Positions 4,693 to 51,241 of a DNA stretch of 64,000 nucleotides are shown one piece after another (position 1 is the first letter of the stretch; each line of letters starts with the position of its first letter). A program made the position numbers and the translations under genes. This DNA is from Rhodosorus marinus CCMP1338. Taxonomy: Eukaryota > Plantae > Rhodophyta. The notes beneath the pieces were generated by a model that did no database searches, was not told the DNA's origin, and saw only the letters and a program-made list of their open reading frames with translations. The stretch lies in contig JAMWBK010000001.1 of the NCBI GenBank assembly GCA_029953675.1, forward strand, positions 3,410,001 to 3,474,000. Direction: 5' to 3'.

Positions 4693-6210
4693 ATGAAGGA
4701 TCTCCTTGCCTATGATTTGGGTGGCAGCAGCCTTCGACTGGGAGTTGTATCCACCAGCCTTCAGCTTAAGAAGCTCGTCCGTTTTCCGCTGAGCATTTCT
4801 GGAAATGAATACGGAGAATACGACGCGGAGCCTTGGACATGGTGGAGGGCGTTTGAGCGGGGCTGTGAAAGGCTTCTCGAGGAGGGCTACGATCTCGGGC
4901 AAGTATCTGCTGTTGTAGGATGCGGGTTCACTCGGACGCAAGTACCTCTCGACGATCAGGGAAATGTTGTTCATCCCGCGATCACGTTCCAGGATTCCAG
5001 AGGAGCCAGGGCGCTGCAGAACTTCCTCGACAGAGCGCCGAGAGGCATTCGTGAGAGACTTCACAACCTCAGTCCGTACCATCCGATTGCTAGGCTGCTA
5101 TGGTTCAAGGAAAGCAAGCCGGAAATCTGGCGCAGGGTTTCCAAGGTGATCGAGCCCAAGGACTACCTCAACCTTCAGCTCACGGGTGTGGTCAGATCGG
5201 ATCAGATTTCGCAGGGTCCGCTTGACAGATTCTTCGATGCTTTGAAGGACGATCAGTCTGTGCTAGATGCCGCAGGGATATCGGCATCGGTATGTCCAGA
5301 GAAAGTCAGTCCATTCTCCCCAGTTGGTGTGGTGAAAGGCGGGCTGTCGACAGTTTTCGATAAGCTTGCCGGCAGGCCCGTCCTGTGCGGTTCAATCGAC
5401 ACATGGACGTGCGTCTTGGGCAGCGGAGGTCTGAACCCAGGTGTTGCTTATGGCATCTCCGGAACCAGCGATGTTGTTGGAGTTATCACCGAAGCACCGG
5501 CTTCCTGTGATGGTCTGATCTCAGTACAATGGGGTCCGAACCTCTGGCAACTTGGTGGGCCATGCCAAGGAGCGGCGTCGCGGTTGGAATGGGCCTCCGA
5601 GCAGTTCTACTCTGGTCAGCCTTTGGAGGACGTGGTTCTGAAGGCCTTGGAGAGCGACGAGGAACCTCCAATCTTTCTGCCTTACTTGGACGGAGAACGT
5701 ACGCCGTTTTGGGACGCGGATCTCCGAGGTGCGTTCGTGGGCGTGAGCGTCAACCACAAGGCCAGGGATTTTGTACGTGCCGTCGCCGAAGGGCTCAACT
5801 TCCTGTCACGGGTTATCCTCGAGAGGGCGGAAGAAGCAGCTGATATCCGAGCCAAGCACGTCTGCTTCTCTGGAGGGCTAGCCAACAGCGTGGGCCTGTG
5901 CCAGCTTAAGGCCGACGTCCTGAACCGTCTGGTCTTTGTCCCCGAGAGCAGAGAGTCGGGTTTGATCGGATCCGCAAGCGTCGCCCTCAACAACTCCGGC
6001 AACATAAGAAACGTCGCAGAGATAATAACGACCACCCGGGGAACGTGGTACTCACCAAACCCTGTCAAGCACGAGGAGTACAATGAACGGTTTGAAGTGT
6101 TTAAGGAGGCCACTCGGGCTTTACGAGACATTTCTCACCGCCTAGCTCGCGGTCAGCGAGGTGGTTTGACTACCGATGGATGTGAAGAGCACCACCTTAA
6201 TCAGCGCTGA
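4693..6210 (+). CDS. FGGY-family carbohydrate kinase (xylulokinase-like), intronless, bacterial type, 505 aa
   Basis: LAYDLGGSSLR phosphate-1 motif, AITFQDSR, GSIDT, ISGTS, FLPYLDGERTPFWDADLRGAFVG, RAVAEG, FSGGLANS...QLKADVL. Substrate cannot be determined from sequence. Confidence 0.9.
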   Translation: MKDLLAYDLGGSSLRLGVVSTSLQLKKLVRFPLSISGNEYGEYDAEPWTWWRAFERGCERLLEEGYDLGQVSAVVGCGFTRTQVPLDDQGNVVHPAITFQDSRGARALQNFLDRAPRGIRERLHNLSPYHPIARLLWFKESKPEIWRRVSKVIEPKDYLNLQLTGVVRSDQISQGPLDRFFDALKDDQSVLDAAGISASVCPEKVSPFSPVGVVKGGLSTVFDKLAGRPVLCGSIDTWTCVLGSGGLNPGVAYGISGTSDVVGVITEAPASCDGLISVQWGPNLWQLGGPCQGAASRLEWASEQFYSGQPLEDVVLKALESDEEPPIFLPYLDGERTPFWDADLRGAFVGVSVNHKARDFVRAVAEGLNFLSRVILERAEEAADIRAKHVCFSGGLANSVGLCQLKADVLNRLVFVPESRESGLIGSASVALNNSGNIRNVAEIITTTRGTWYSPNPVKHEEYNERFEVFKEATRALRDISHRLARGQRGGLTTDGCEEHHLNQR

Positions 6211-6685: not shown

Positions 6686-7105
6686 GGGTTTAGAAGTTCG
6701 ACAGAGTCTTAGTGGTCAGGTCTTTTGAGTTTGAGACGAAAGTACTAGGCGTCTGAGGTAGTCCTTCACACAGCGGAACACATAAAGAAAAATTTTGTCA
6801 AGTAACCCTCGAAGGGGTTCGGCGGGAGTTTGACAGAGTATTCCCGGGCCACTTCCGTGCCCACAGCACTCTGCCCTGAGGAGGTGGCCTTTCACACAGA
6901 ACATATAGAAGTCTGCTAAGTAATGGCCGAGGGGGACTAGCGGGAGTTCGACGGAGTCTTGTCCGGTCTTTTGAGTTCCGTGACGAGAGTACGAGGTTTC
7001 TGAGAAGGTCTTTCATCAAGGGGTGTTAGCGGGAGTTTTGACAGAGTCTTGTCCGGTCTTTGAGCTCCGCGACTAGGCGTCTGAGAAGGTCTTTCACAGA
7101 GAAGA
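6686..7105 (+). repeat. Degenerate tandem array, 4 copies of a ~90-130 bp unit
   Basis: Anchor GAC(A/G)GAGT at 6700, 6832, 6950 and 7040, with a shared (A/G)GCGGGAGTT prefix in three copies and GTCTTTTGAG / CTGAGAAGGTCTTTCA motifs recurring. Confidence 0.8.
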
Positions 7106-7754
7106 AAGCCTCTTAGAACATGTTTCAAAAGTACACAGTTCGGTGGGTCTTGTGGACGCTGAAGGAGGTGTTGTACGAGGTAAGATATCCCTCTAGTGAC
7201 AAGGGGGCTTGGAAGGCCTTGGGGCGGGTGAGAGCGGGGAAACATATGTGTAATGGGATTTTGCCACAGAGAATTATGAATTGGTTGGTGCATTCTAAGT
7301 GACTTTTTTCAGAGGGAAGAAGACGTACTCAAGATGTCGTTTTAAGTAAACGTTCTCGCAGGATCTTGTGGAAAGTGAAGGAGGGAGGAGGGGGAGGCGC
7401 TGCACAGTTGAAAGATCTTCAACGGAAGGGGGAGGACGGGTTGGAGGATGGTGAGAAAGGGAACTTTTTGGTGCGGTCCGAATTGACAGAGAAACGATTC
7501 GTTTTTTGGCATTCTGAGTCTGCGTTTCCCAGTGAAGGAAAAACGTATTCTCGCGTGGGTGGTTGTGGAGGGTGAAGGAGAGGTGGAGGGGGAGACTTTT
7601 GCTAAGGAGTTGAGGATTCACTAGTTGGCATTCTGAGGTTTTTATTTTACTTGGTTGAGAGCTATTTTAGTGAGCCCCGAAGGCCTTTGGGAGAGTCGGA
7701 GGGGGTGTTTTGGTTAAGGCCCGAAGCGGGGTTGGTGGATGGGAAGGGGCGGGA

Positions 7755-10044
7755 ATGAACTTTCGAGCTGCGTATTTGAGGAGTTTAGGGTTTGAGCATG
7801 AGAAGATAGCAAAGTCTGAAGTTGGGGCGTTGTTCTCTGAGGATGTTATTCCTGTAAATCAGCTGAGGAAGTTGTGTTTGAGGGTGGGTATCGGATCGAC
7901 GTGGAGGGGGGAGGTGTGGAAGATCATTCTTGGAGTGATTCCTCCGCAGCGAGCTGCTTGGGACTCAACCTCGGAAATTCGGAAGCAGTCTTATGATCAG
8001 CTGTACGAGGCGGCTTCTCTGGTGTTGACTTCAGAGGAACGGACTCGGGAGGATGGGATGTTGGCGGCGTACTCGGTGCACCAGTACTTCCTTCGTCGTG
8101 TATCGAAAGCATCGTCTGCAAAGCTGTATCCGTCTGTTCGGACCGTTCGGAGTTTCTTGCTCAGTGAGGAAGCTGCAGGAGCGCGTTCGGTGCTTCGAAT
8201 CATGCTCCGCGTCTTCAACACAGAGTGGGAGTCATTTTGGTGCGCAGTGAAGTTCATCCAGGCGCAGAGAATAGTAGCGGTCCTCAAACACTCCGGCAAG
8301 CGCCTGCAGTCCTGGGGAGTCGCCTACAGGGTTCGCCTTCTATCCGAGCTACTTGTTCAGAAAGAACCACAGATCGTAAAGACGCTACATGCCACAGGTC
8401 TTCGTGAGGAAGATTTTGCAAAGCTCTGGCTCAGAAACTGCCTCGCTGACGCCCTCCGAGAAGACGACGTCATCGCTTTGTGGGACCACCTTATCGCAGC
8501 ACCGGCAGACTTTGTCTCCCACTTCTCCCTGGAGCTGCTCAAACATCTCGAGCCACAGATCAACGAACTCAAACACGAGGGCAAATCCGAGATTCTTCAA
8601 CTGCTCGCCAACATTCCGCCACTACAAAGCCTGGAAAAGTTCACCCTCCCAGCGGCCGCCGCTACAGCCAGCCTACTGGACAAAAACACAAACCTCGATC
8701 CTCTGCTAACCTTCGACGTGGAATGGCCGCTCCTACGATATGGAGAACGTGGAGGTAAGACTGGATTTCACACACCAAGGGCTATCAAAACAAAAGCTGC
8801 ACTACTCGAAGACGCGGGGCGGAAGACCCGAAACGGACACCAACGATTCGGGATATTTTCTTTCCCCCCACCCACCCACCCACAAGCTCCGCGATGCTCG
8901 AGCTGTTTCTCGCCAAAGAAGTCGGGGAGTAAACAAGAACTGGAGACCAACTCGTCCCAGATGTCTTCCCTTCAAGCTATGGCGCTTGGTCGGAGATTCT
9001 CTGGCCAGACAGGGAACGCCGCAATGACAGAAGAGCGGGGATCGTTGTGCTCGTTGATCACAACGGCCTGATCACCCTATTGCTTCCCTCCATTTGCTAG
9101 TCAAAAGCTTGCGCTGCTGTACTTCGTCAGAACCAGACCAGATCAGGCTCCAAACCCTTCTAGAGGTCGCAAGCGCATCGTTTCAGCTAGGATAGAGAGG
9201 AAACACCCCGTCCTCTTGTTTCGGTTTTCGGGAAAAGGCGAGGTCGTTAATTGAAACCTGTTCTTTTTGTGCTGTCTTCAGTTATTGTGAAGGTAATGCA
9301 GCTGCTGCTGAGGACGAAGGGACTTGGTGGGATGTTCAGCGTTGATAGCTACTACGGCGATCGGACTGAGAATGCGTTGACAAGGTTGAAGAAGCAGATG
9401 TATGAGATTGAGGTCGAAAAGCAGCAGAAGTTGTCGATGCAGTCGGACCCGAATCTCAGGAGTGCTCCAAACGGGGAGCAGCCGATGCGGGTTGGTGGGG
9501 AGCCGACGCGGGTTGGTGGGGAGCCGACGCTGAGAGATAAAAGTGAAGCTTGGAAGGGGGTTCGGCGGACTAGACTACAGGGCTCAATGGATGAGATGAC
9601 GCCGTCTAGCCTGGAAATGGACAACTCGCCTATGGCAAAACACGAACTAGACGCGGATAATATAACTGGCGTGGGAGGCGTGCAGAAAAGTGCCTGGGAC
9701 GGCGAACGAGCGTTTGGCCCCAAGCTATGGCCAACCCTCCTGGAGTCAATATCTGCTGGCTCTAGGGGAGACGACGTCAAGGCGCTTCAAGCGTTGTTGA
9801 TACAGAGGTATGATGCTCAGTTCGTCCGGATGCAAAATAGCTTTTTGATATTCATCTCGACTTAGGTTGACTGCGTTCGTTCGCTCCGTACAGACATGGG
9901 TACTCCAAGGTTCGAGAAGACGGCTACTTCGGTACCCAGACTGTGAACGCCGTCAAGGATTTCCAAGCACACGTGGCCACGCGAGCAATCCCGGTGGATG
10001 GAATAGTCGGCCCAGTAACCTGGATCCACCTCCTCGATTCCTGA
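7755..10044 (+). CDS. TBC1D7-like Rab-GAP-TBC protein fused to two C-terminal peptidoglycan-binding-like (PG_binding_1) domains, 3 exons, ~558 aa
   Basis: join(7755..8754,9282..9807,9894..10044) = 1677 nt, phases 1 and 2 match. The N-terminus MNFRAAYLRSLGF...WRGEVWKIILGVIPP resembles TBC1D7 (NFRSVYYEKVGF...ALVWKVLLGILPP). Splicing reconstitutes WPLLRYGERG|VIVKVMQLLL...VDSYYGDRTENAL, and a second copy GSRGDDVKALQALL...DGYFGTQTVNAVKDFQ...VDGIVGPVTW follows. Confidence 0.75.
9481..9529 (+). repeat. In-frame 21-nt tandem duplication (P[M/T]RVGGE x2) in the linker between the PG-binding domains
   Basis: GCCGA(T/C)GCGGGTTGGTGGGGA repeated about 2.3 times. Confidence 0.85.
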
Positions 10045-10995
10045 GACAAGAACCTTTCAAGAAAGGTCGGGAGAAGCCACGTTGGACCTTCAACTATTTA
10101 TGGAACAAAGTTTCCTCAACAAACACCTTTGAAAGAACAACATTGTACATAGTGTCAGGTGGACTCTGCAAACCACGGTTGCTTCAATGGACAGACTTTC
10201 AGATTTAAAAGGCAATAGAAAATCAAAAGCTTCCAATCCAGATCTGAAGACCTCACAAAGAATCAAGAAAGTTCTCTACACAAAACTCGCCTCTTGCGCA
10301 TCCAAACTGTGGAGAACGCTTTTGAGAAACTCACCGGAACCGAACCATCCGCCATCCGAGTTTTGTTTTTGCACACACGACATTTTCAATCAAAACAAAC
10401 CACAAATTGACTGTAAGGGATCGCCGAACTCGATCTTATAAGTGAAAAATGGTGAAAATATTGATTTAGACGATATTAATAATAGCAAATATTGAAATAT
10501 ATATTGTATATACGTTTTCTACGTCGAGTCAATTTGTTTTTTGCCATTTCATGTTGTTCAGTTTGTGTGGACGATCGAATTTCCTGTAGAAAGAGGTCTT
10601 TTGCAAGGGTTTGTCAATGGCATTGGGGGGGAGGCGCTTGTTGAGCGGCCCCGGGCATTGGGAAGATGAGCACATTTCTTATAAATCATCATCGTTCAGT
10701 CAGAGACAAGGCTACTCTGTGATTCGAGAAAAACTACGCCAAGCAGAGAGAGGATACGCCTCTAAAACTTGGTTGTCAGGTGTCGGATACAGATCGCTTC
10801 GGGGTTCGTTCTTCCATTCGGTGTGCAAAAGGGTTCTGTTCCCATCGCTAGGTTGTGGAGGGGAAGTAGGGTCTGGAGCTCTTGCGGTGATCGCTAAGGA
10901 AAGTTATCTTCGGGTTTCGCTAGTTACATATCTTTTTATTTTTCATTGGCTCTTTAGATATCATAAATCATAAGATGTGCGAGTTTCTCTGCATT

Positions 10996-12576
10996 TCAAG
11001 CGACTATGGGCTGCGCCTGCGTAGTTTCCTTCGCCAGTCGTGGAGGCTGGCTGTCCAGCACAAGCTTCTTCAGGAGAACACTCTTCATAATGATGCTCCT
11101 CAGTCCGTAATATGGAATTTCGAAGAAGATGTTCTGGAGGAGCGCCTTCGAGCCTTGAGTGTCGTACAAGATCCGAAGCGTGTCTACGCTTTTCGCCAGA
11201 GCACTCTTGTTCATATCACGGTGAACGATCACGTCTGTGTTCCACGGGTCGATCTCGACCATCTTGTCCGCATAATGCGCACGGAAGAAGCGGGCATTCG
11301 GCCGTTGATTCGCCATGCAAGCTGAGAACGAGAAAGTCGAGTTCGAGATCGCCAGCACGTCACACTGCGACAGAATGTACCAGTCCGGGAACATTCCTGC
11401 TCCGAGATCGGCAAAGTTCTCCGGCAGCTCAGCTCCCAAGGACTCCGAGGTGACTGGGTTGAATTTCGCAAAGTCCCTCAGGACAGTATCAACTTCGTCC
11501 GATGCAACAAAAAGAACCGGGTTCTCCAGCGTCGGCCAAATCTCCTCCAACCATTCCAAGTACCACTGCGTCGGAGCAACATATCCGAAAGACGATGCAG
11601 CAATGTTCTTGTAGTCACCAAGACGAAGGTGACATCCCACCACTGTCCTCTTGCCGTTTTGCCTCAGCTTGTCGTCAATGACCTTATCAAAATGGTTCTT
11701 TAGCGAGGGCACTGGGGTGAAGATGTCCTGAATGCTCTCCTTGAATTGTCTATACACACTTGTGTGCCACTGGAACCACCCCCAGATGTCCACGTTCACT
11801 GGCAAGTCGTTAGTTTCCGCGCTGAGCTGCGACGGGAGAATCTCTGGCACCGGCATGCCGTCGTTCGACTGGGTGATGTACTGAAGGAATTCGTCCGTAA
11901 AGGTAGAGTTTGCCTTGGTCTCACGGGTCTCAATGACCGCCGGAAGGGCGCGCTGGACGACATCATCCTGCAGTCCAAAGAGATCCTTGCCGACCCAGTA
12001 GGGAACCTGCACCTCCGCATCGACGAGCTTCGCATAGCACCTCAGGAAAGCATATTGCAGCAACTGGTTTCCAAATCGTCCCAGTTCTCCGAAGCCTGTC
12101 ATGGTGATGACTGGTTTACCGTGGTACGGCTCGAAGGGGGCAATATTTGCATTCAAAGGAGGCGTTACGTTTCCCAGGCTGAAAATCCGGCTCAGCGCAA
12201 TCTCAGTTTCCTTCTTGTATTTGGTGCTCTTTCCGCCTTCGACGTTCATTTCCTCTTCATCAGAAATGGAAGAAATGGTCATCGACTCAGATGTGAGAGA
12301 GTCCTTGTCATCCTTCTCGATCATGCTCTGGTAGAAGCGCACGATCAGCTCTGCACCATCATCACCAAGTTTCTCTCGGACATCTGATGCACTGGAAGCA
12401 TGATCCAAACCAGCCTGGGAGAATACCATATCCAGAATACCGATCATCTCACGCGATTTGAGACCCACGTTTCCAACGTCTCCATTCGACTGAGCCAGCT
12501 TTTCCAGAACAGGGATCCAAGTGCCCTTCTCCATCTGATCTCGTTCCAAAGATTCACTAGTGCTTAAAACACCCAT
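10996..12576 (-). CDS. GT11 / alpha-1,2-fucosyltransferase-like glycosyltransferase, cyanobacterial-type domain; 5' end uncertain
   Basis: Long single ORF with GRFGNQLLQYAF, WGWFQ, HLRLGDY, LFVASDE and DWYILSQCDVLAISNSTFSF, the GT11 motif set. First in-frame ATG is at 12576; upstream exons are possible. Confidence 0.8.
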   Translation of the reverse strand: MGVLSTSESLERDQMEKGTWIPVLEKLAQSNGDVGNVGLKSREMIGILDMVFSQAGLDHASSASDVREKLGDDGAELIVRFYQSMIEKDDKDSLTSESMTISSISDEEEMNVEGGKSTKYKKETEIALSRIFSLGNVTPPLNANIAPFEPYHGKPVITMTGFGELGRFGNQLLQYAFLRCYAKLVDAEVQVPYWVGKDLFGLQDDVVQRALPAVIETRETKANSTFTDEFLQYITQSNDGMPVPEILPSQLSAETNDLPVNVDIWGWFQWHTSVYRQFKESIQDIFTPVPSLKNHFDKVIDDKLRQNGKRTVVGCHLRLGDYKNIAASSFGYVAPTQWYLEWLEEIWPTLENPVLFVASDEVDTVLRDFAKFNPVTSESLGAELPENFADLGAGMFPDWYILSQCDVLAISNSTFSFSACMANQRPNARFFRAHYADKMVEIDPWNTDVIVHRDMNKSALAKSVDTLRILYDTQGSKALLQNIFFEIPYYGLRSIIMKSVLLKKLVLDSQPPRLAKETTQAQPIVA

Positions 12577-13012
12577 TCTCAACGTTTTCACAAAAAAAAT
12601 TACACTGTTCAAAAAGACGCGACTGATTCTTCAAGCGATCCCTCCCCCTCCCAAACGGTCAATGCACAGTCGTTCCTCCGTGCACACAAGTATGTCTAAA
12701 GGCGATAGCAGTCAAGCAACCCATTCACGAACACCCACTTTTCACGAACCCCACAAACACATAGCCCAAAACAGATCCACCACCCAAAAAGCCACAAAAA
12801 AAACGCTCCTCTACCACAGAATACACCCAAGTCGTTCAACAGATCCTCTACCCACGATCCTCCCCTCACACCCTCCCAAATCTACAGCCCATCTCACCCT
12901 TTCTTATATAGTAGGAGATGGAGTCTCAAACCTAGAAAACCTTACACCCCCCACTATCACCATCAATATCCAGCTCCCCATTTTTCTTCCCCCTTAACCT
13001 CCTACCCATTCC

Positions 13013-21152: not shown

Positions 21153-23572
21153 CGCGATGTCTTCAGCGTTACACGCCTTCTCCTAAGTAGTGCGACCACC
21201 CCGTATGTGTATATATAGTAATAGAGTGTTTAAATCTGTCTGCAAACGTTGATTAACTTAAAAGGTTGACTGGGAAGTTATGAAGCCTCAAGCGAGAATA
21301 CCATCGGACTGAGGAGCGAACCGTGAGGCCCTGCTCTCCAAGTGAGCCTGGCTCTCAGTGCCAACCCTCTTTGCATGGTGTTTGGGTGTCCGTGATACAA
21401 CTGCCAAGGAACTTGGAAGCGGCTGAAGGTTACTTTATATCGTACTTTCTTACTTCATCTCTCTGATCTCCACCCATCCTAATCGAAGGCGGATAGAGGG
21501 AGTAAAGCTCTCACTGTCTTCCCGAAAGTGCCACGATAAGTTTTTGGCGAAGGAGCCCATCACGCGTCATATGTGAGATTGCGTAGTGGAATCTGGTGTT
21601 AGCCCTTCCTCTACCCCTGCCAGAGCAGACCCTGTCAGGAAGCTTCTCCGTTCCTACGTTTTCACAGGAAACATCCTGGCAAGATGATCCACCGGGACGC
21701 GCACGAACCCTTGAATACAGTCCCTCTGAAAACACCAGAAGAAGATCCGAAGCCGTGAGGTCTACCGAACCTCAAATCTGCCATTGCCAAAACCTTTACC
21801 TCAACCCCAAGCCAACCCAGCAGAAACAAAACCACCGAAGAGCAACTATCAAAATCGCCATCGGGCGCTTCTTATCCAACGGATTTTTGCTTATCACACG
21901 AATCACAGCTTCACTCACTTCATGTTTTGTTTTTTCCCACCCCGCCCGTTCCAATCCAGGCCATGACCCTGGTTCTCCCTCCCTACTCCACCAACGCCTT
22001 CTCCCTCCGAAACTCATCCAAGATCTTCAGTTCAGTCAACAAAAAATGCATTGAATTAAAGATTGAATATTTTCTAGTATGCCAAAATGTTTACTAAGAT
22101 ATTGATGTTTGACAAACTTGGACTTCAGTTCAAGGATCTGGAGGCACCGTTCCAAGATTCCTTCCTAGCGTATCTGATATTCCTTAACTAAAAGCCTATC
22201 CGGTAGAATCCACCCCTCTCCCCGGTCGTGAGCCTCCCCGCGCGACGGATTCCCTGACGAAGAAGACCAACAAGCCGTTTTCGTAAGAGCAAAACAAAGA
22301 AGGGAGAAAGTTGCCACCACAAAACCTTCAAATCAAATGGAATTAAGAACCTGCCCAAAATCTTATTTTAAACGGAAAGTCATGACTGTGAGGAGGCGGA
22401 TCCATTGAAATCAATCGAAAACTATTTGATGAGGATGACGGCTTTGTTGCGGAAAACCCTAACGGACACCTCGGACAGGGCTATTCAAGGACCGTAAAGA
22501 GAGAACGCTTGCGCTGTCTGGGTTGCGTTAATGAGGCTGCGGGAAAGGTGTTCGCAAACGGAACCCTGAGAGTGTAACCCGACAGAACCAGCCGCATTGC
22601 AGTTTTGGGCTTGTCGCACGTCAAGGCGGTCCCTTTCCTAGCGTAGGTCTCCGCCGGTCTCCCAGTTGGCGCCGACATGTTTCCGCCACTTTTTGGGCCC
22701 TGGAGGACGTCAGCTGGATGTGTGTGCGCTGCCTCCTTGTCAAGCAAATACTGCTGGTGAGTCTTCGTCAAAGGCATATGGGAAGCGTCGTCCGCACCAG
22801 GCTCTTAGTCCTGCTGTAGAAATCTGGTTTAACAGCAGAGCCGCCAGGAGCGATGGAGGGAAGACCACCTGCAAACTCGTAGTTCCGGATAGCGAGAGAC
22901 CGAAGAATACCTCAGTAGTCCAGGTTGGATCTTGGACCGGGCTCCGAGATGTAGTAGGCTTTGATCAACTGTCTGCGCTCTCTCTTCTCTCCTCAGCCGT
23001 TAAGCCTACTGCCGCTAAGAGCGAGTCTGGTCGACTGTAGTTTAGATCTCATTCGGAACTCGTCGACGATGAGTTCTGAAGAGCCAGGGCTGAATTGATA
23101 TGATCTATCGCGACGTACTGTACCGGTCATGTCATTCCCGGCCATCGACAAGTACATCTTTCAAGTCTCTACATGGCTCTGCCGCTACCACTTTCCCCGC
23201 CGCCTCACCAGCCGGACCCCACACAGAGCAAGTGTTCTCTCTGTACATTCCTTGCCTAGCTCCGTTGTAGACAACGGTTAGGCCTTTCCACGACAAAAAA
23301 ACTCGTCATCCTTATCAAACAGTTTTCGATTGGTTTTATCGGATCCTCATCCTCGCGATGACAGGATATTTTGTGTCAAAGAAGACTTTATGTGCTTAAT
23401 TCCTTCGATTTTGCAGGATTTGGCTGGCAACTTTCTCTTTTTTTGCTCTTGGAGACTGCGCTTGGTGGTCTTCTTGGTCATGGAATCTGTCAGGTAGGGG
23501 AGGCTCAGGACGGGGGAGTTGGGAAATTTTTTTTGGGTGGTCCTTTTGTTAGTTTTTGTTCTGGCTCAAGGA

Positions 23573-24823
23573 ATGTCATTGAGTGTGGGGTTTATAGTTA
23601 GAATAGTAGCGAGACCTAACCCAGTGACAGTTCGACCGATGTCTAGTCTTTGGCAGAAACAGACAGCAAGTTTGAATTTGGGCAGGGGCCATCCGAAGCT
23701 GAGCCTTCTCGACGTGGAAACGATCAGCGCGGCGGTTCAGGATATCGCCAAGGATGGATCAGAGGCGCCCTGGACGATGCAGTACGGGAGCGGGAGGGGC
23801 CCTACGCCTATGTTGGATGCGGCGACGATGTGGATGTCAGAATGGGGGAGGTCGAGGGACCTGAGCTCGGATCGAATTCTGGTGACAGCTGGTGCTTCAG
23901 CAGCGCTGAACATGATCTGTGCCATCTTCACCAAGCCCGGTGATGTGGTAGTCGTGGAAAAGCCGTCTTACTTCCTCGCATACGGGATTTTCAAAGAGCA
24001 CAATTTAAAGATCGTCGAGGTTGATACCGACGAGGATGGCATGGACCTGGACAAGTTTGAGGAGCTTCTTGAAGACGGGCTAAAACCCTCCCTAGTTTAC
24101 ACAGTTCCAATCTGTAGCAACCCAAAAGGAACGAGCATGAGCGCTGAGAGGGGAGCCAGGCTAGTTCACATGAGCAGACACTACGGTTTCAAAATCGCAT
24201 CCGATGAGGTCTACTTCCTTCTTCAGTTTGAGGACCCGAAGATGGAGAAATCTCTCGCCGAAGAAGACGATCCAACGAATCCAACCGTCCTGGCAATGCA
24301 CAGTATGAGCAAGACTCTCGGGCCAGGCGTAAGGGTCGGCTGGATAGATGCACATCCAACGCTTATAGACAAGCTTACGACGTTTGGACCGGTAGTCTCC
24401 GGAGGATGTCAGAGCCACTTCATGGCATCTGTCGTCGCGCAAATCCTACTTGAAGGAAGGAAGCCGTTGCTTGACAAGTTCCGAACTGCCTATCAAGCTG
24501 GAGCGGTGGCCCTGACAACCGCTCTGGATAAGTACCTCCCGAGTGTGCTCGGCGGTGCGAGCTTCAGATATTATAAGCCTCGGGGAGGGTATTTTGTATG
24601 GGTGGAACTGCCCAAGGAGATCAACACGAACGAGCTTGTGAAGCTCGCCGATGAGAAACACGGCGTGTTTTTCTACAAAGGATCTGCGTTTTGTGTGGAT
24701 GGGAAAACCTTCACCAGCTGCCTCAGGCTCTGCTTCGCGTTCTTAGAGCCTGACGAGATTGATCAGGGCGTCAAAAGATTGGCGAACGCGGTCGAGGATT
24801 ACTCCAGCCGCAATGTCTCGTGA
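23573..24823 (+). CDS. PLP-dependent aminotransferase class I/II (2-aminoadipate/aromatic aminotransferase-like), intronless, probable organellar presequence
   Basis: MQYGSGRG, ILVTAGASAAL, VVVEKPSY, VYTVPICSNPKG, IASDEVY, SMSKTLGPGVRVGW (PLP lysine), GGYFVWV, LRLCFAF. Start could also be the ATG at 23639. Confidence 0.9.
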   Translation: MSLSVGFIVRIVARPNPVTVRPMSSLWQKQTASLNLGRGHPKLSLLDVETISAAVQDIAKDGSEAPWTMQYGSGRGPTPMLDAATMWMSEWGRSRDLSSDRILVTAGASAALNMICAIFTKPGDVVVVEKPSYFLAYGIFKEHNLKIVEVDTDEDGMDLDKFEELLEDGLKPSLVYTVPICSNPKGTSMSAERGARLVHMSRHYGFKIASDEVYFLLQFEDPKMEKSLAEEDDPTNPTVLAMHSMSKTLGPGVRVGWIDAHPTLIDKLTTFGPVVSGGCQSHFMASVVAQILLEGRKPLLDKFRTAYQAGAVALTTALDKYLPSVLGGASFRYYKPRGGYFVWVELPKEINTNELVKLADEKHGVFFYKGSAFCVDGKTFTSCLRLCFAFLEPDEIDQGVKRLANAVEDYSSRNVS

Positions 24824-24912: not shown

Positions 24913-25647
24913 TCATAGCAAATCTTCGAGGGGTACAGAGCCAAGCGTAGGTGTGGATTTTTCGATCTGAGCTACGTCCTCATCGGTCGTCTGCTGGTCG
25001 TCAACATCAGCGCTGTCTGAAATCAAATTTGTGGAGAAGTCGACCACTGTCGGCTTCTTTTTAATTTCTCTGGCTTCCGTTCCTCCACTGGACTTCTGCA
25101 GATCCGCAATTTTTCGTTTCTTTGCGTTCAAAACCTCACAGAATCGGACCAACATCCTCTCCTCCAGTTCATCCTTTGCCTGGGTGCAAGCTTCTAAAGC
25201 CTTTTCCAGCTTCTCACACTTTGATCTCAGTTCCTTCAAGTCGTCTTCCAACTTAACCCTTTTCGACCTCTCTAAGTTCACTTGTGAAACCAAGTGATCA
25301 CCGAAACCCACACCAAGCGACAGCGTTATCCTCGCCGCCACCACTGTCCCATTCCCAAACGGAACATCAAGGCAGACTTCACCCTCCTCATCAACACGGA
25401 GTGACCCTAAAGCCTTCTCAGAGAGCACATTTCTGAGCCTCTCAGCTGCTCCTCCGATCACCTTCGCACGCGTCTCGATATCCTCCTCACTCCCAACAAA
25501 ACGCCAGCTTCTTCCACTTCCATCCACCCCGAATACGCGAACAGACTTGTCCCCAGAAACGCTCACAGAAAGCATCCATCCGTCCTCACCTACCTTCCCA
25601 AACCAGGAGCTCGAAGACTTCCCCACGTCATTTGAGCTTTCAGCCAT
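24913..25647 (-). CDS. XRCC4: DNA repair protein XRCC4 (NHEJ), 244 aa
   Basis: Beta-sandwich-like head, then a coiled coil ending KDELEERMLVRFCEVLNAKKRKIADL (the XRCC4 ligase IV-binding signature LExxLYxxFxxVLNxKKxKI), then an acidic tail. Confidence 0.85.
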   Translation of the reverse strand: MAESSNDVGKSSSSWFGKVGEDGWMLSVSVSGDKSVRVFGVDGSGRSWRFVGSEEDIETRAKVIGGAAERLRNVLSEKALGSLRVDEEGEVCLDVPFGNGTVVAARITLSLGVGFGDHLVSQVNLERSKRVKLEDDLKELRSKCEKLEKALEACTQAKDELEERMLVRFCEVLNAKKRKIADLQKSSGGTEAREIKKKPTVVDFSTNLISDSADVDDQQTTDEDVAQIEKSTPTLGSVPLEDLL

Positions 25648-47211: not shown

Positions 47212-50200
47212 ATGTCAACCTCATTTGCGAGAAGAGATCAGCTGCTGGATATCCAGCGGCGAGCACAATCGTTGTGGGAATCGTTGAAGGTATTTGAGCT
47301 GGATGCTCCGGTTGGGGATGCTGCGGCTGTGCCCAAGTTCATCTGCAGCTTTCCGTATCCTTATATGAACGGATTTCTGCACGTGGGACATGCGTTTACC
47401 TTTTCCAAAACCGAGTTTGCTACGGGGTATGAACGTCTGAAGGGAAAGAATGCCCTATTTCCGTTCGGATTCCACTGCACCGGAATGCCCATTCAGGCAT
47501 GTGCGAACAAGCTCAAGGCTGAGCTTGAGCAATATGGAAATCCACCCAACTTTCCCGTAGAGGAAGAATCTAGTGAACGTAAGCTAAAGGCGGAGGAAAC
47601 TTTTCAATCGCGCTCTGTTTCTTTCCCACGTGCTCACGCCTCCCTCGGGTTCAAATCGATCAGATACCGCGATGAAGTCCAAGGTTGCCGCGAAGACTGG
47701 GAAAGCGAAGAGACAGTGGGATATTCTGGTGCAGAGCGGGATCAGCGAGTCGGAGATTCACAAGTTTGCCAGCGCCCTGGAATGGCTTCGTTTCTTCCCG
47801 ACAGAGGGGCTCAAGGACGTCACAGCCTTTGGCGCAAAAGTGGACTGGAGAAGAAGCTTCATCACCACGAGCGTCAACCCTTTCTATGATTCTTTCATCA
47901 GATGGCAGTTCAACCTTCTTAAGAGCATCGAAAAAGTGAAGTTTGGTCATAGGTAAGTCATTCCACGTGTGTCCTCGTCAAGGAGACCGCAACCATAAAG
48001 GCGACGACTAGAAGGGGATGAAAGTGTTGGAAAGGAGAGCAGCTTTTTTCTCCGACTAGAAGACCGCCACGTTCATGCATGGAAAAAAGTCAGCTCGCTG
48101 AAAATAACGCTTCTGGTTTCTTTAGATATACGGTCTGGTCCCCACTAGATGGACAGGCGTGTGCTGATCATGACCGAGCCAGTGGCGAAGGAGTAGGACC
48201 GCAGGAGTATACTCTGATCAAGATGAAAGTTAAAGAGCCGTTCCCTGAGGTTTTGAGCCCACTCGCCGGTAAAGAGGTACTGTCTACTGTTTCGTGGTTC
48301 GGTTTGGTCCTCTCCAAGATGTGTTTGGATCACTACGGCTTAACGCCCGTACCTTTTTTTTGGCCGTGACTAGGTATTCTTGGCGGCGGCGACTCTTCGA
48401 CCAGAGACCATGTACGGACAGACCAACTGCTGGATCCTTCCCGACGGAGACTACGGCGCGTACGAGTTAAAAAATGGCGATGTCTTCGTAATGACCGATC
48501 GAGCGGCGAGAAACATGGCCTTCCAAGAGTTCTTCCCGGAATTTGGCAAGTACTCGGCGCTCCTGACCGTCAAAGGAAAGGATCTCATCGGGCTTCCGCT
48601 CAAAGCCCCCAACGCTATCCACGACCCCATCTATGTTCTGCCCTTGACAACTGTGTCGACAACGAAAGGAACAGGGGTCGTCACTTCAGTGCCTAGCGAC
48701 GCTCCAGATGACTACAGAGGCCTTCAAGATCTGAAGGAAAAGGAGAAACTCAGGTTCGTGCGTCCCTACCAAGAAAAACGTATCAACCGCAGCCCGGCCG
48801 ACCGCATGGGGCTATCTTGCCGCCCTTGGGTGAAAAATTGTTTTTGTTGACTATGACCAGCGGAATTCAGAAACCGTAGCCGGGGGGCTACGGTTTCGAG
48901 CACCATACTCTGAACTCTGTCACTGCTTTATTTGTGAAGTGCTTGGTGCGTGGCATAGGCCAAAGCTCTTCACGACTAACACCCAGTCAGCTCCCCACCC
49001 TCACGAAACGAGAAAAGTTTTGCTAATTTTCAAAAATAATTAGATACACTGTCCAAGTTGTCCTTAGAAATATATACAAGACAATTATTAGTTTTATGAA
49101 TAGAAGGTGAATTTGAACCATGCGTTCGTAAGATGTTTAATTATTTACTCAAAATTGGTTTTTGGTTTGTGAATAGGAATGATTTTGATTTGAAAGAGGA
49201 ATGGGTAGTACCTTTCGATCCCGTGCCGATAATAGAGATTGCGGATCTTGGGAATTTGGCTGCGGTGAAGGCGTGTGAGATCTACAAAGTGAAGAGCCAG
49301 AAGGACAAGGAAGGACTGGCGAAGGCGAAGGAGGAGGTATATAAGAAGGGATTTTACGGGGGTACGATGATTATCGGGGAGTTCAGTGGCCAGTCTGTGG
49401 AGTACGCGAAGAACAGGATCAAGACGCAGATGGTGGAGAGCGGTGATGCGGTTGTTTACAACGAGACGGAGAAGGTGGTAATCTCGAGGACTGGCGATGA
49501 GTGTGTGGTCGCCTTGACGGATCAGTGGTACCTGGACTACGGCGAGGCGGAGTGGAGAGCATTGGCGGAGGAGTGCCTCGAGTCCATGGAGACGTACGCG
49601 CCAGAAACTCGGCATGGATTTGAGGGAACGCTCAAGTGGCTCCATGAATGGGCGTGCACAAGGACGTTTGGACTTGGGACCAAGCTACCTTGGGATCCGC
49701 AGTGGGTGATCGAGTCCCTTTCAGATTCAACGATTTACATGGCCTACTATACTGTCGCCCACTTGCTGCAGGGAGCTGACAACCTGGAAGGATCCAGGCC
49801 AGGCCCGCTGAACATCCAGCCCGCAGAGCTCACCGACCCGGTTTGGTCGTATATCCTGCTAGGAAAGGAGCTCACCGAGCAACAACTATCGGCGTCAGGT
49901 ATTGCCAAGGACTCCATGGAGAAGCTCAGGAACGAGTTTACGTACTGGTAAGTTCAACGCAAGCATCTAGTTTTCCCAACCAAAGAGGAGGAGGCTCACC
50001 TGTCCCTGTAATTGTGAATTAGGTACCCCCTTGACTTGAGAGTATCCGGAAAAGATCTGGTCCCAAACCATCTGACGTTCTGGATCTACAATCACGTGGC
50101 CATATTCCCACGTGAGATGTGGCCAAAGGCCGTGCGAGCCAACGGACACATTCTGATAAACGCGGAGAAGATGTCCAAGCAGACGGGTAATTTCATCACG

Positions 50201-51241
50201 CTTAGGGATGCCATCGAGCAGTACTCAGCAGATGCGGTGAGGCTCACGCTTGCGGACGCTGGAGATACCGTGGAGGATGCCAACTTTTCTACGAAGACGG
50301 TATCAGATACGGCGATCTTGAAGCTCACGACTCTGCTAGCGCTTGCGAACGAGGGCCTCGCCGTCCTTGAATCCATGCGCACCGGACCGCTGGAGCTGTT
50401 CGCAGATCGTGCGTTTGCCTCACAGCTGAATGACGCCGTGGAACGGGCCGACGCGGCATATGGGCAGATGATGTACCGCGATGCTCTGAAGGTATGTTTC
50501 TTTGAGCTTCAGTACGCACTCGGGAGCTACAGAGTGGCAGTAGGGGCAGATAAGACCCAAGCTTCTCTCTCGAAGATGCACAAGGATCTCTTCACGAGAT
50601 TCTTGGAGGCGCAAGCGATCATGCTTTCACCTATTTGTCCGCATACTTGCGAGCATATTTACGGCATGATGCATCCCGGCGAAACCATTATGAACGCCAA
50701 CTGGCCTGCTTCTGAGCCGGTTGATGAAGGGCTGCTAGAAGGCGCGAAGTACCTCGACGACGTCATGCATCGATTGCGTGTTAGCAAACAGAATCAGAAG
50801 GGTTCAAAGAGGGAGACAGACAAACCCAACGCGGTGCGTATGTATATTTGTGAGGACCTGCCGGAATGGCAGAAGATTTCCATGTCTGTCCTCAGGGAGA
50901 ACTTCGACGCCGAATCCAGGACTTTTCCGAACGATTTGGCCAAGAGAGTAACGGCGGCTATGCCAGCGGAGCTCAAGAAGAAGATGAAAAAGATCATGCC
51001 GTTTGTCGGGATGGTACGCGACGCCGCCAAGGAGCAAGGGGAACCCGCACTCGACAGGACCCTTCGGTACGACGAGAAGGAAGTTCTAACCGAGAATATG
51101 GAGTTGATCAGAGAACAGCTGGGACTTGTACAACTCAATATACGTTCTTCAACGGATACGGGAGCAGAGGACGCCACGCTCGCTGGCGATGCTCTCCCTG
51201 GGCGACCAACGTTCGCCTTTCACGTGACGGAATCCTCGTAG
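47212..51241 (+). CDS. LARS1: Leucyl-tRNA synthetase, cytosolic (eukaryote/archaeal type), 6 exons, 1058 aa
   Basis: join(47212..47578,47664..47952,48126..48276,48374..48753,49177..49947,50023..51241) = 3177 nt. [55 protein letters not shown] (CP1 editing domain), [26 protein letters not shown]. Confidence 0.97.
48870..48897. other. Perfect 12-bp stem hairpin inside LeuRS intron 4
   Basis: GAAACCGTAGCC-GGGG-GGCTACGGTTTC. Confidence 0.85.

Follow-up and report, generated by a model that had tools for sequence, protein, structure and literature searches.

A three-exon gene of Rhodosorus marinus joins a TBC1D7-like domain to peptidoglycan-binding-type modules, in a fusion that looks ancestral to red algae

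In the red alga Rhodosorus marinus CCMP1338, a stretch of 64,000 nucleotides (nt) of contig JAMWBK010000001.1 (assembly GCA_029953675.1, positions 3,410,001 to 3,474,000 of the forward strand; the window, to whose first letter all coordinates below refer) carries at 7755-10044 (+) a gene that couples a TBC1D7-like domain to modules of the peptidoglycan (PG)-binding family PG_binding_1. This locus is one real, three-exon spliced gene with a product of 558 amino acids (aa), as transcripts from sister strains confirm. Judged from profiles and structural models, a non-catalytic TBC1D7-type fold is followed by a two-helix PG_binding_1 remnant (D1), a linker predicted to be disordered and a complete three-helix PG_binding_1 domain (D2), and the same order of parts recurs in four classes of red algae. 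In humans, TBC1D7 is the third subunit of the TSC1-TSC2 complex (PDB 3QWL, 5EJC, 4Z6Y, 9CE3). The reading that we favour, and consider reasonably probable, is that the red-algal protein is a TBC1D7-type scaffold fused to PG-like modules that acts as a cytosolic adaptor.

Results

In the raw sequence, the first in-frame ATG lies at 7755, consistent with orthologous proteins that likewise begin with MNFR, and the stop codon TGA lies at 10042-10044. Exon 1 (coding part 7755-8754, + strand as all features of this gene; aa 1-333 and the first base of codon 334) encodes the TBC1D7-like domain and the start of D1, which begins at aa ~321 (nt 8715); its 3' end reads ...GGA GAA CGT GGA G up to 8754 and is followed by the donor GTAAGA. 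Intron 1 (8755-9281; 527 nt, phase 1, GTAAGA...CAG) contains a (CCCA)4 microsatellite at 8867-8883 and closes with a pyrimidine-rich tract and the acceptor ...TCTTCAG/TT at 9281/9282. In exon 2 (9282-9807), D1 is completed by ~9406 (aa 334-375); the linker follows (aa ~376-478), and from aa 479 (nt 9716) on the exon encodes helix 1 of D2. Intron 2 (9808-9893; 86 nt, phase 2, GTATGA...ACAG) interrupts this complete PG_binding_1 domain, with its donor GTATGA directly after 9807 and its acceptor ...GTACAG/A at 9893/9894, and exon 3 (9894-10044) supplies D2 helices 2-3 (aa 509-558) and the stop. Joining 7755-8754, 9282-9807 and 9894-10044 yields an in-frame coding sequence of 1677 nt, that is 558 codons and TGA. 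Its product matches GenBank KAJ8909145.1 (NDN08_005839, Rhodosorus marinus, "hypothetical protein") in every residue; UniRef gives this protein the name "TBC1 domain family member 7". By this identity, the window is nuclear DNA of R. marinus.

Transcripts from two genera agree with this model. One transcript contig from a related strain (L001; 2354 nt, without introns), 82-88% identical to the window at the nucleotide level, aligns as three segments, 7405-8757, 9280-9807 and 9892-10202. Their inner ends lie no more than 2-3 bases from the junctions 8754 to 9282 and 9807 to 9894 that an earlier interpretation of this DNA from its letters alone (the sequence-only reading) had proposed, together with a single spliced product of 558 aa; both proposals are borne out. 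The same contig sets the minimum extent of the untranslated regions, 7405-7754 on the 5' side and 10045-10202 on the 3' side. Two proteins derived from MMETSP transcripts, P0007 (R. marinus, 551 aa) and P0003 (Bangiopsis sp. CCMP1999, 567 aa, 51% identity), run continuously over both exon junctions, and a genomic contig from a third relative (L002; first exon 61% identical) is interrupted by GT...AG introns at both of these codon positions. Intron 1 is absent from L001, P0007 and P0003, and intron 2 is removed in L001 and in a JGI transcript contig of a sister strain (L004).

Comparison with L004 reveals how the parts of the gene evolve. Exon 1 is 94.3% identical and ungapped, with differences at 2.1%, 0.6% and 14.4% of codon positions 1, 2 and 3, respectively, and exon 2 is 87.9% identical with only one gap, of 21 nt. 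Intron 1 is 77.7% identical, contains nine runs of gaps, eight of them frame-breaking, and displays no third-position excess; it evolves like non-coding DNA. From this pattern of gaps and substitutions, the 105-codon tail that read-through to the stop at 9071 would add is non-coding, and coding read-through, which the sequence-only reading had held out as an alternative, finds no backing in a tail that is not conserved. The part of exon 2 that encodes the linker includes a 21-nt tandem duplication (9480-9530; 2.4 copies, 96% match), which adds seven residues (GGEPTRV) relative to two other Rhodosorus strains and thereby accounts for a length of 558 instead of 551 aa.

Partly spliced RNAs exist as well: L004 keeps intron 1 and lacks intron 2, while the MMETSP isoform P0002 retains intron 2. 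Retention of intron 1 would give a TBC-only isoform with a non-conserved tail. On this basis the locus might be taken for two genes, or for an annotation artefact, with the TBC open reading frame (ORF) ending at the in-frame stop 9069-9071 and the PG part standing separately. A mechanical ORF list indeed has separate ORFs at 7710-9071 and 9251-9865, intron-unaware callers have split the gene (P0004, P0005), and intron 1 is retained in L004. However, fully spliced transcripts are found in two genera, the read-through tail is neither conserved nor coding-like, orthologues of the Cyanidioschyzon merolae type are called as single proteins of 740-744 aa, and D1 is whole only after exon joining and conserved in all orthologues. 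Since L004 carries both gene halves on one RNA, it gives no hint of a second promoter or of another start of transcription. The spliced transcripts, the non-coding tail and the single-protein orthologues effectively refute the two-gene reading, which we reject.

L004 aligns to window 7536-9807 and 9892-12762, and continues into the antisense strand of a convergent downstream gene, which is due either to a chimeric assembly or to 3' ends that overlap. At its other end, L004 1-162 matches window 6737-6893, and the match resumes at L004 379 and window 7536. Upstream of the gene, ~640 nt of the window face 216 nt of L004, which may represent an intron in the 5' untranslated region or a large indel.

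The N-terminal part of the protein is most similar to human TBC1D7, as the sequence-only reading had predicted. Pfam detects RabGAP-TBC at aa 144-269 (7.6e-13). In a single-protein search of all PDB sequences the best matches are five human TBC1D7 entries (9e-10), the next TBC family following at 8e-4; the alignment begins at residue 2, and the motif NFR..Y...GF is common to both proteins. A profile of 11 red-algal orthologues (A2), searched against the PDB, matches TBC1D7 end to end at 3.4e-24 (profile positions 2-292, chain residues 9-272 of 294), nine orders of magnitude ahead of the runner-up, TBC1D22A (1.4e-15). Fold comparison points the same way. We built an AlphaFold2 model from an 11-sequence alignment, with a mean predicted local distance difference test (pLDDT) score of 68 for the whole protein and of ~80 within the TBC domain. 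When it is compared with the PDB by Foldseek, ranks 1-5 are all TBC1D7 (TMt 0.77-0.81, root-mean-square deviation (rmsd) ~5 Å); TBC1D15, Gyp1 and TBC1D22 follow at 0.55-0.66, and every non-TBC1D7 TBC domain stays at TMt 0.66 or below. Identity to TBC1D7 in the structural alignment is about 16-17%.

TBC-J/TBC1D7 proteins are described as being without catalytic finger motifs (PMC3655817, PMC12245910). In a regular-expression scan of eight orthologues, which operates at the level of motifs and not of structure-based residue mapping, neither IxxDxxR nor YxQG occurs in the window protein or in six of the seven other red-algal orthologues; the remaining one, from a cyanidiophyte, has two chance IxxDxxR patterns and no YxQG. 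By profile and model, we assign aa 1-313 to the TBC1D7 (TBC-J)-type, non-catalytic TBC fold. Because the Arg and Gln fingers are absent, this domain would be a binding scaffold rather than a RabGAP, and an active RabGAP is rejected at the motif level. In its overall build the red-algal protein differs from its human counterpart. Human TBC1D7 is a stand-alone protein of 293 aa, and the best non-red matches are likewise stand-alone TBC1D7-type proteins without a C-terminal extension (a 292-aa protein and TBC1D7 of Polysphondylium). Instead of the single domain of ~290 aa that characterizes the type, the 558-aa window protein has a C-terminal extension of ~245 aa comprising D1, the linker and D2, or 1.7 PG_binding_1 units.

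D2 matches Pfam PG_binding_1 (PF01471) at aa 495-553 with 63.3 bits against a cutoff of 23 (2.4e-17, profile positions 1-55 of 57). Its model (aa ~479-556) consists of three helices with a pLDDT of ~85, except for residues 537-542 (<50), and the Foldseek match is the N-terminal domain of SleB (TMt 0.77, rmsd 2.1 Å, 34% identity). Sequence and model thus agree in presenting D2 as a complete three-helix, bacterial-type PG_binding_1 domain and a full member of PF01471, as had been anticipated for the C-terminus; it resembles, as a full domain, those of bacterial and phage wall enzymes with PF01471 (P0014, phiKZ gp144, SleB, AP3 endolysin).

D1 (aa ~321-375) is the more degenerate of the two modules. 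Alone it scores 14.8 bits, below the Pfam cutoff of 23, over profile positions 4-39 of 57, and the Bangiopsis copy reaches 22.8 bits against the same cutoff. Aligned by hhalign over nine orthologues, D1 and D2 match with 97.8% probability (E 7.8e-13, 47 columns), in an alignment that stops ~20 residues before the end of D2. All 11 PDB matches of a D1 profile are PG-binding proteins (best 6e-4). A D1-only model has two helices, the second one extended, and its top nine Foldseek matches are PG-binding-type domains that superpose with about 1 Å rmsd over 43-48 residues; the superposition covers helices 1-2 of the bacterial and phage domains, from which D1 differs by the absence of a third helix. 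In every orthologue, conservation of D1 halts after helix 2, and the C-terminal "DG.vGp.T...L" helix is missing. On this combined evidence from profiles and models, D1 is best described as a two-helix remnant of a PG_binding_1 repeat, real and conserved but not intact. The sequence-only reading had one intact domain rebuilt across intron 1; a homologous module is indeed joined there, yet it scores below the cutoff and lacks the third helix.

Outside the red algae, D1 and D2 find their closest relatives in multi-repeat PG_binding_1 proteins. D2 is 43-52% identical to the repeats of the top-ranked ones, among them a lysozyme-type bacterial wall hydrolase (P0014), whose repeats even begin "WP.L..G..G..V..LQ.LL...G" as does the red-algal module. 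Nearly every red-algal orthologue has the motif D-G-(hydrophobic)2-G-x-x-T in D1 and two instances of it in D2. Between the two modules, pLDDT stays below 50 over aa 388-470, with means of 23-37 for blocks of 10 residues over aa 391-470; the linker of ~100 aa is predicted to be disordered, and it evolves fast. Comparing the window protein region by region with seven orthologues, we observed identities of 42-74% in D2, 34-60% in D1, 24-57% in the TBC domain and 2-15% in the linker. Hence, the PG-like modules are more constrained than the TBC domain, and D2 is the most conserved region.

The distribution of the fusion was established by an exhaustive HMMER search over 1.84 billion representatives, followed by cluster look-ups. 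Word-indexed searches, whether the query was the single protein or one of two alignments, recovered only the Rhodosorus/Bangiopsis group and one fungal TBC protein, and missed the other red-algal orthologues, which the exhaustive search alone brought to light. The fusion is present in Stylonematophyceae (Rhodosorus, Bangiopsis), in two Porphyridiophyceae (Porphyridium purpureum, KAA8498930.1, and Timspurckia oligopyrenoides), in the florideophyte Hildenbrandia rubra (Florideophyceae), and in Cyanidioschyzon merolae (XP_005538176.1/BAM82140.1, 743 aa) and a second cyanidiophyte. These four red-algal classes are every class with a named sequence in the search. The C. merolae-type orthologues are called as single proteins of 740-744 aa in JGI/IMG metagenome records; we read these calls as uninterrupted ORFs, and to that extent the fusion is independent of any splice prediction. 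Beyond this group of named red algae and their close relatives, the TBC and PG parts occur together in none of the 181 retrieved proteins. Roughly 90 bits come from a TBC1D7-type domain on its own, and some 60 bits or more from D2; given these summed domain scores, any further fusion would rank within the first ~25 matches. The fusion therefore looks, on sequence grounds, ancestral and restricted to Rhodophyta.

Two more distant TBC1D7-like proteins, P0071 and P0099 (366-383 aa, JGI/IMG and Logan), end within D1 ("...LLRARGLGSIFFVGMS"); they are probably further red-algal orthologues that were cut at an intron placed differently than in Rhodosorus.

These proteins already have entries in public databases, where they are called "TBC1 domain family member 7", "hypothetical protein" and "peptidoglycan binding-like domain-containing protein". 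In metagenome records, the Cyanidioschyzon-type clusters P0015 and P0018 are labelled "lysozyme family protein" and "peptidoglycan hydrolase-like protein". Despite such labels, we saw no hydrolase domain in fusion proteins of this type; the "lysozyme" and "hydrolase" names are hence misleading and will propagate. The combination of TBC1D7 with peptidoglycan-binding modules is described in none of the papers that we found, searches by accession and for Rhodophyta gave the same result, and literature on PG_binding_1 in eukaryotes yielded no relevant precedent. Thus, the gene has been deposited and automatically named, while the architecture itself appears undescribed. The sequence-only reading, which did not recognise the architecture, was right in this respect, although the protein is not a singleton but has public entries in four red-algal classes, including those from Porphyridium, Timspurckia, Hildenbrandia, C. 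merolae and Bangiopsis that the survey of algal proteins it had suggested has now recovered.

Discussion

With the gene structure settled, the question is what such a protein may do. The prediction shows no transmembrane segment (highest 19-residue Kyte-Doolittle mean, 1.12), and since TBC1D7 homology starts at residue 2, there is no room for an N-terminal targeting peptide. On these grounds the protein is probably cytosolic, and a plastid or secreted location is rejected. Bacterial and phage PG_binding_1 proteins, in contrast, are secreted or periplasmic and carry a hydrolase, whereas the red-algal module is attached to a eukaryotic scaffold, and a Pfam scan of the 558-aa protein finds no catalytic wall-degrading hydrolase domain. 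As far as can be judged from the sequence, real peptidoglycan binding by D1 and D2 is unlikely.

Peptidoglycan synthesis is not known from red algae. Moreover, the PG_binding_1 fold also forms the prodomain of matrix metalloproteinases (MMPs, matrixins), where it has a protein-binding role. Because the three-helix bundle of these eukaryotic proteins is used for protein-protein contact, the MMP prodomain is a precedent for a non-glycan role. The parallel goes only so far, as MMP prodomains are extracellular and autoinhibitory; they are also not among the D2 matches in the HMMER and PDB profile searches, the closest of which are bacterial and phage proteins, and no direct comparison with them was made. 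In view of the probable cytosolic location, the lack of known red-algal peptidoglycan and the matrixin precedent, a protein seems more likely as ligand of D1 and D2 than wall peptidoglycan. The description of PG_binding_1 in the sequence-only reading as mainly a bacterial wall module thus needs to be widened by the MMP prodomain, and protein binding appears at least as likely as glycan sensing.

Some sequence features of D2 could also be taken to suggest a muropeptide or peptidoglycan sensor, in line with the glycan sensing that the sequence-only reading had raised, in which D2, with or without D1, would bind bacterial wall fragments in the cytosol and signal through the scaffold to Rheb/TOR. 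The score of 63.3 bits for a bacterial-type domain, the identity of 43-52% to PG-repeat proteins that include a wall hydrolase, the recurrence of the D-G-(hydrophobic)2-G-x-x-T motifs and the rank of D2 as the most conserved region would all be consistent with this. However, the motifs are part of the structural core of the fold too, so that their conservation is no proof of ligand binding; with neither a predicted transmembrane segment nor room for a signal peptide, the protein would not meet wall peptidoglycan; and both the absence of known peptidoglycan synthesis in red algae and the protein-binding prodomain of matrixins argue for another ligand. We consider such a sensor improbable, and see no better prospects for the wider claim that the fusion wires cytosolic glycan or muropeptide sensing into Rheb/TOR in all red algae. 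Were it true, a wall module captured more than 1 billion years ago would replace or supplement the missing TSC1, and TOR would respond to bacterial wall fragments, floridean starch or dividing-ring glucan.

The last two of these ligands lead to a related proposal, namely that the modules bind a cytosolic glucan, either floridean starch granules or the polyglucan of the plastid-dividing ring, and so connect carbon status or organelle division with the scaffold. Red-algal starch is stored in the cytosol, and it is circumstantially suggestive that the fusion is limited to red algae in the HMMER search and kept in all four classes found. Yet no PG_binding_1 domain is known to bind alpha-glucans, the searches turned up no carbohydrate-binding-module signature, and the proposal is pure inference. 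We regard it as very unlikely.

Returning to the favoured reading of a TBC1D7-type scaffold with PG-like modules, its N-terminal half raises the question of partners. TSC1 is the sole established partner of TBC1D7. In the mammalian protein, the TSC1 coiled coil is clamped by L114 and by helix 4, which spans residues 70-95 and includes D87 and V88 (PMC12245910), and our alignment places Q82, L83 and V108 of the window protein at the equivalents of D87, V88 and L114. Position 82 is Q in the window protein and acidic in all seven other orthologues, and position 83 is Leu in six of eight, so that most red-algal orthologues have an acidic residue followed by Leu where human TBC1D7 has D87 and V88. 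Published surveys report Rheb and a TSC2 GTPase-activating protein (GAP) domain from Cyanidioschyzon merolae. The Rheb/TOR link is thereby plausible by analogy and may run via a different coiled-coil partner.

Several observations weigh against this reading. In C. merolae, neither TSC1 nor the tuberin domain by which TSC2 binds TSC1 was found (PMC3236823), for which reason the TOR link may not apply, and the designation as a TSC-complex subunit, made in the sequence-only reading, has to be viewed as an extrapolation. The contact residues R96 and R110 of the human protein are not kept (L91 and A104 in the window protein), a difference from human TBC1D7 that adds to the low overall identity. We infer orthology to TBC1D7 from best-hit and fold ranking rather than from a phylogeny. 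The full-length model is moderate only, with its pLDDT of 68 from 11 sequences, and the Foldseek E-values of D1, 0.36-2.8, are not significant alone for so short a query. The PG-like modules would be of ancient bacterial origin as read from similarity ranking only. Finally, an RNA that retains intron 1 is present in the sister strain.

Some of these points would suit a role independent of TOR, in which the protein is a finger-less adaptor in Rab or membrane traffic, with the PG-like bundles serving dimerisation or cargo binding and without a TSC complex, which may not form in red algae. Besides the failure to find TSC1 and the tuberin domain in C. merolae, the Pfam RabGAP-TBC match and the existence of other finger-less TBC subclasses with extra C-terminal domains, such as TBC-I with its rhodanese domain (PMC3655817), speak for it. 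TBC1D23/TBC-I resembles the red-algal protein in using a dead TBC fold as an adaptor with a second binding domain, but it belongs to another subclass, has another accessory domain, and is matched by the A2 profile at 1.2e-11, compared with 3.4e-24 for TBC1D7. The closest protein by both sequence and fold is specifically TBC1D7, which is without a key helix of the Rab-binding groove (review PMC12245910), and the TSC1-contact helix is partly conserved. The absence of TSC1 is itself insecure, since TSC1 is hard to detect by sequence, as pointed out by Tatebe & Shiozaki (PMC5745459). We thus judge a TOR-independent role to be a serious possibility, but a rather unlikely one.

We propose the following mechanism for the adaptor that we favour. 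The stem lineage of red algae would have gained PG-like units from bacteria, and their fusion with the TBC1D7 gene already present would have given rise to a two-site cytosolic adaptor made of a TBC1D7-type scaffold and D1-linker-D2. Its TBC1D7-like domain may dock by helix alpha4 on a coiled-coil partner, possibly in the Rheb/TSC2-GAP branch, while D1 and D2 together would form another binding site, specific to the lineage.

TBC1D7 has been called "vertebrate specific" in a TOR review (PMC5745459). Contrary to this, the TBC1D7 family is old and occurs in red algae, and in one whole eukaryotic phylum it would appear to have been remodelled by fusion to bacterial-type modules that are under tighter constraint than the TBC domain itself. 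As red algae have kept Rheb and a TSC2-type GAP while TSC1 is unrecognisable, the fusion offers a candidate explanation of how the Rheb/TSC branch may be organised or regulated in this lineage. The orthologue in Cyanidioschyzon merolae, where gene targeting is established, makes the proposal directly testable. The case also illustrates that the label "peptidoglycan-binding" alone does not imply peptidoglycan biology.

Other features of the window

Two further genes flank the TBC1D7-like gene. Upstream, at 4693-6210 (+), lies an FGGY-family carbohydrate kinase, and downstream, at 10996-12612 (-), a GT11-family (fucosyltransferase-like) glycosyltransferase that is convergent with the TBC1D7-like gene; the order TBC to GT11 is kept in the sister-strain contig L004.

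Further along, an ORF at 50036-51241 (+) contains a leucyl-tRNA-ligase anticodon-binding domain and PF24810 RBD_LARS1 ("RagD-binding domain", 4e-14). By these matches it is probably one exon of a cytosolic leucyl-tRNA ligase (LeuRS) gene, and it is a second module in the 64-kb window that is tied to TOR signalling in animals. Red algae retain Rag GTPases. At 24913-25647 (-), an ORF matches the XRCC4 coiled coil (1.1e-06), and another at 23519-24823 (+) matches class I/II aminotransferases (1.6e-33); both resemble ordinary nuclear genes.

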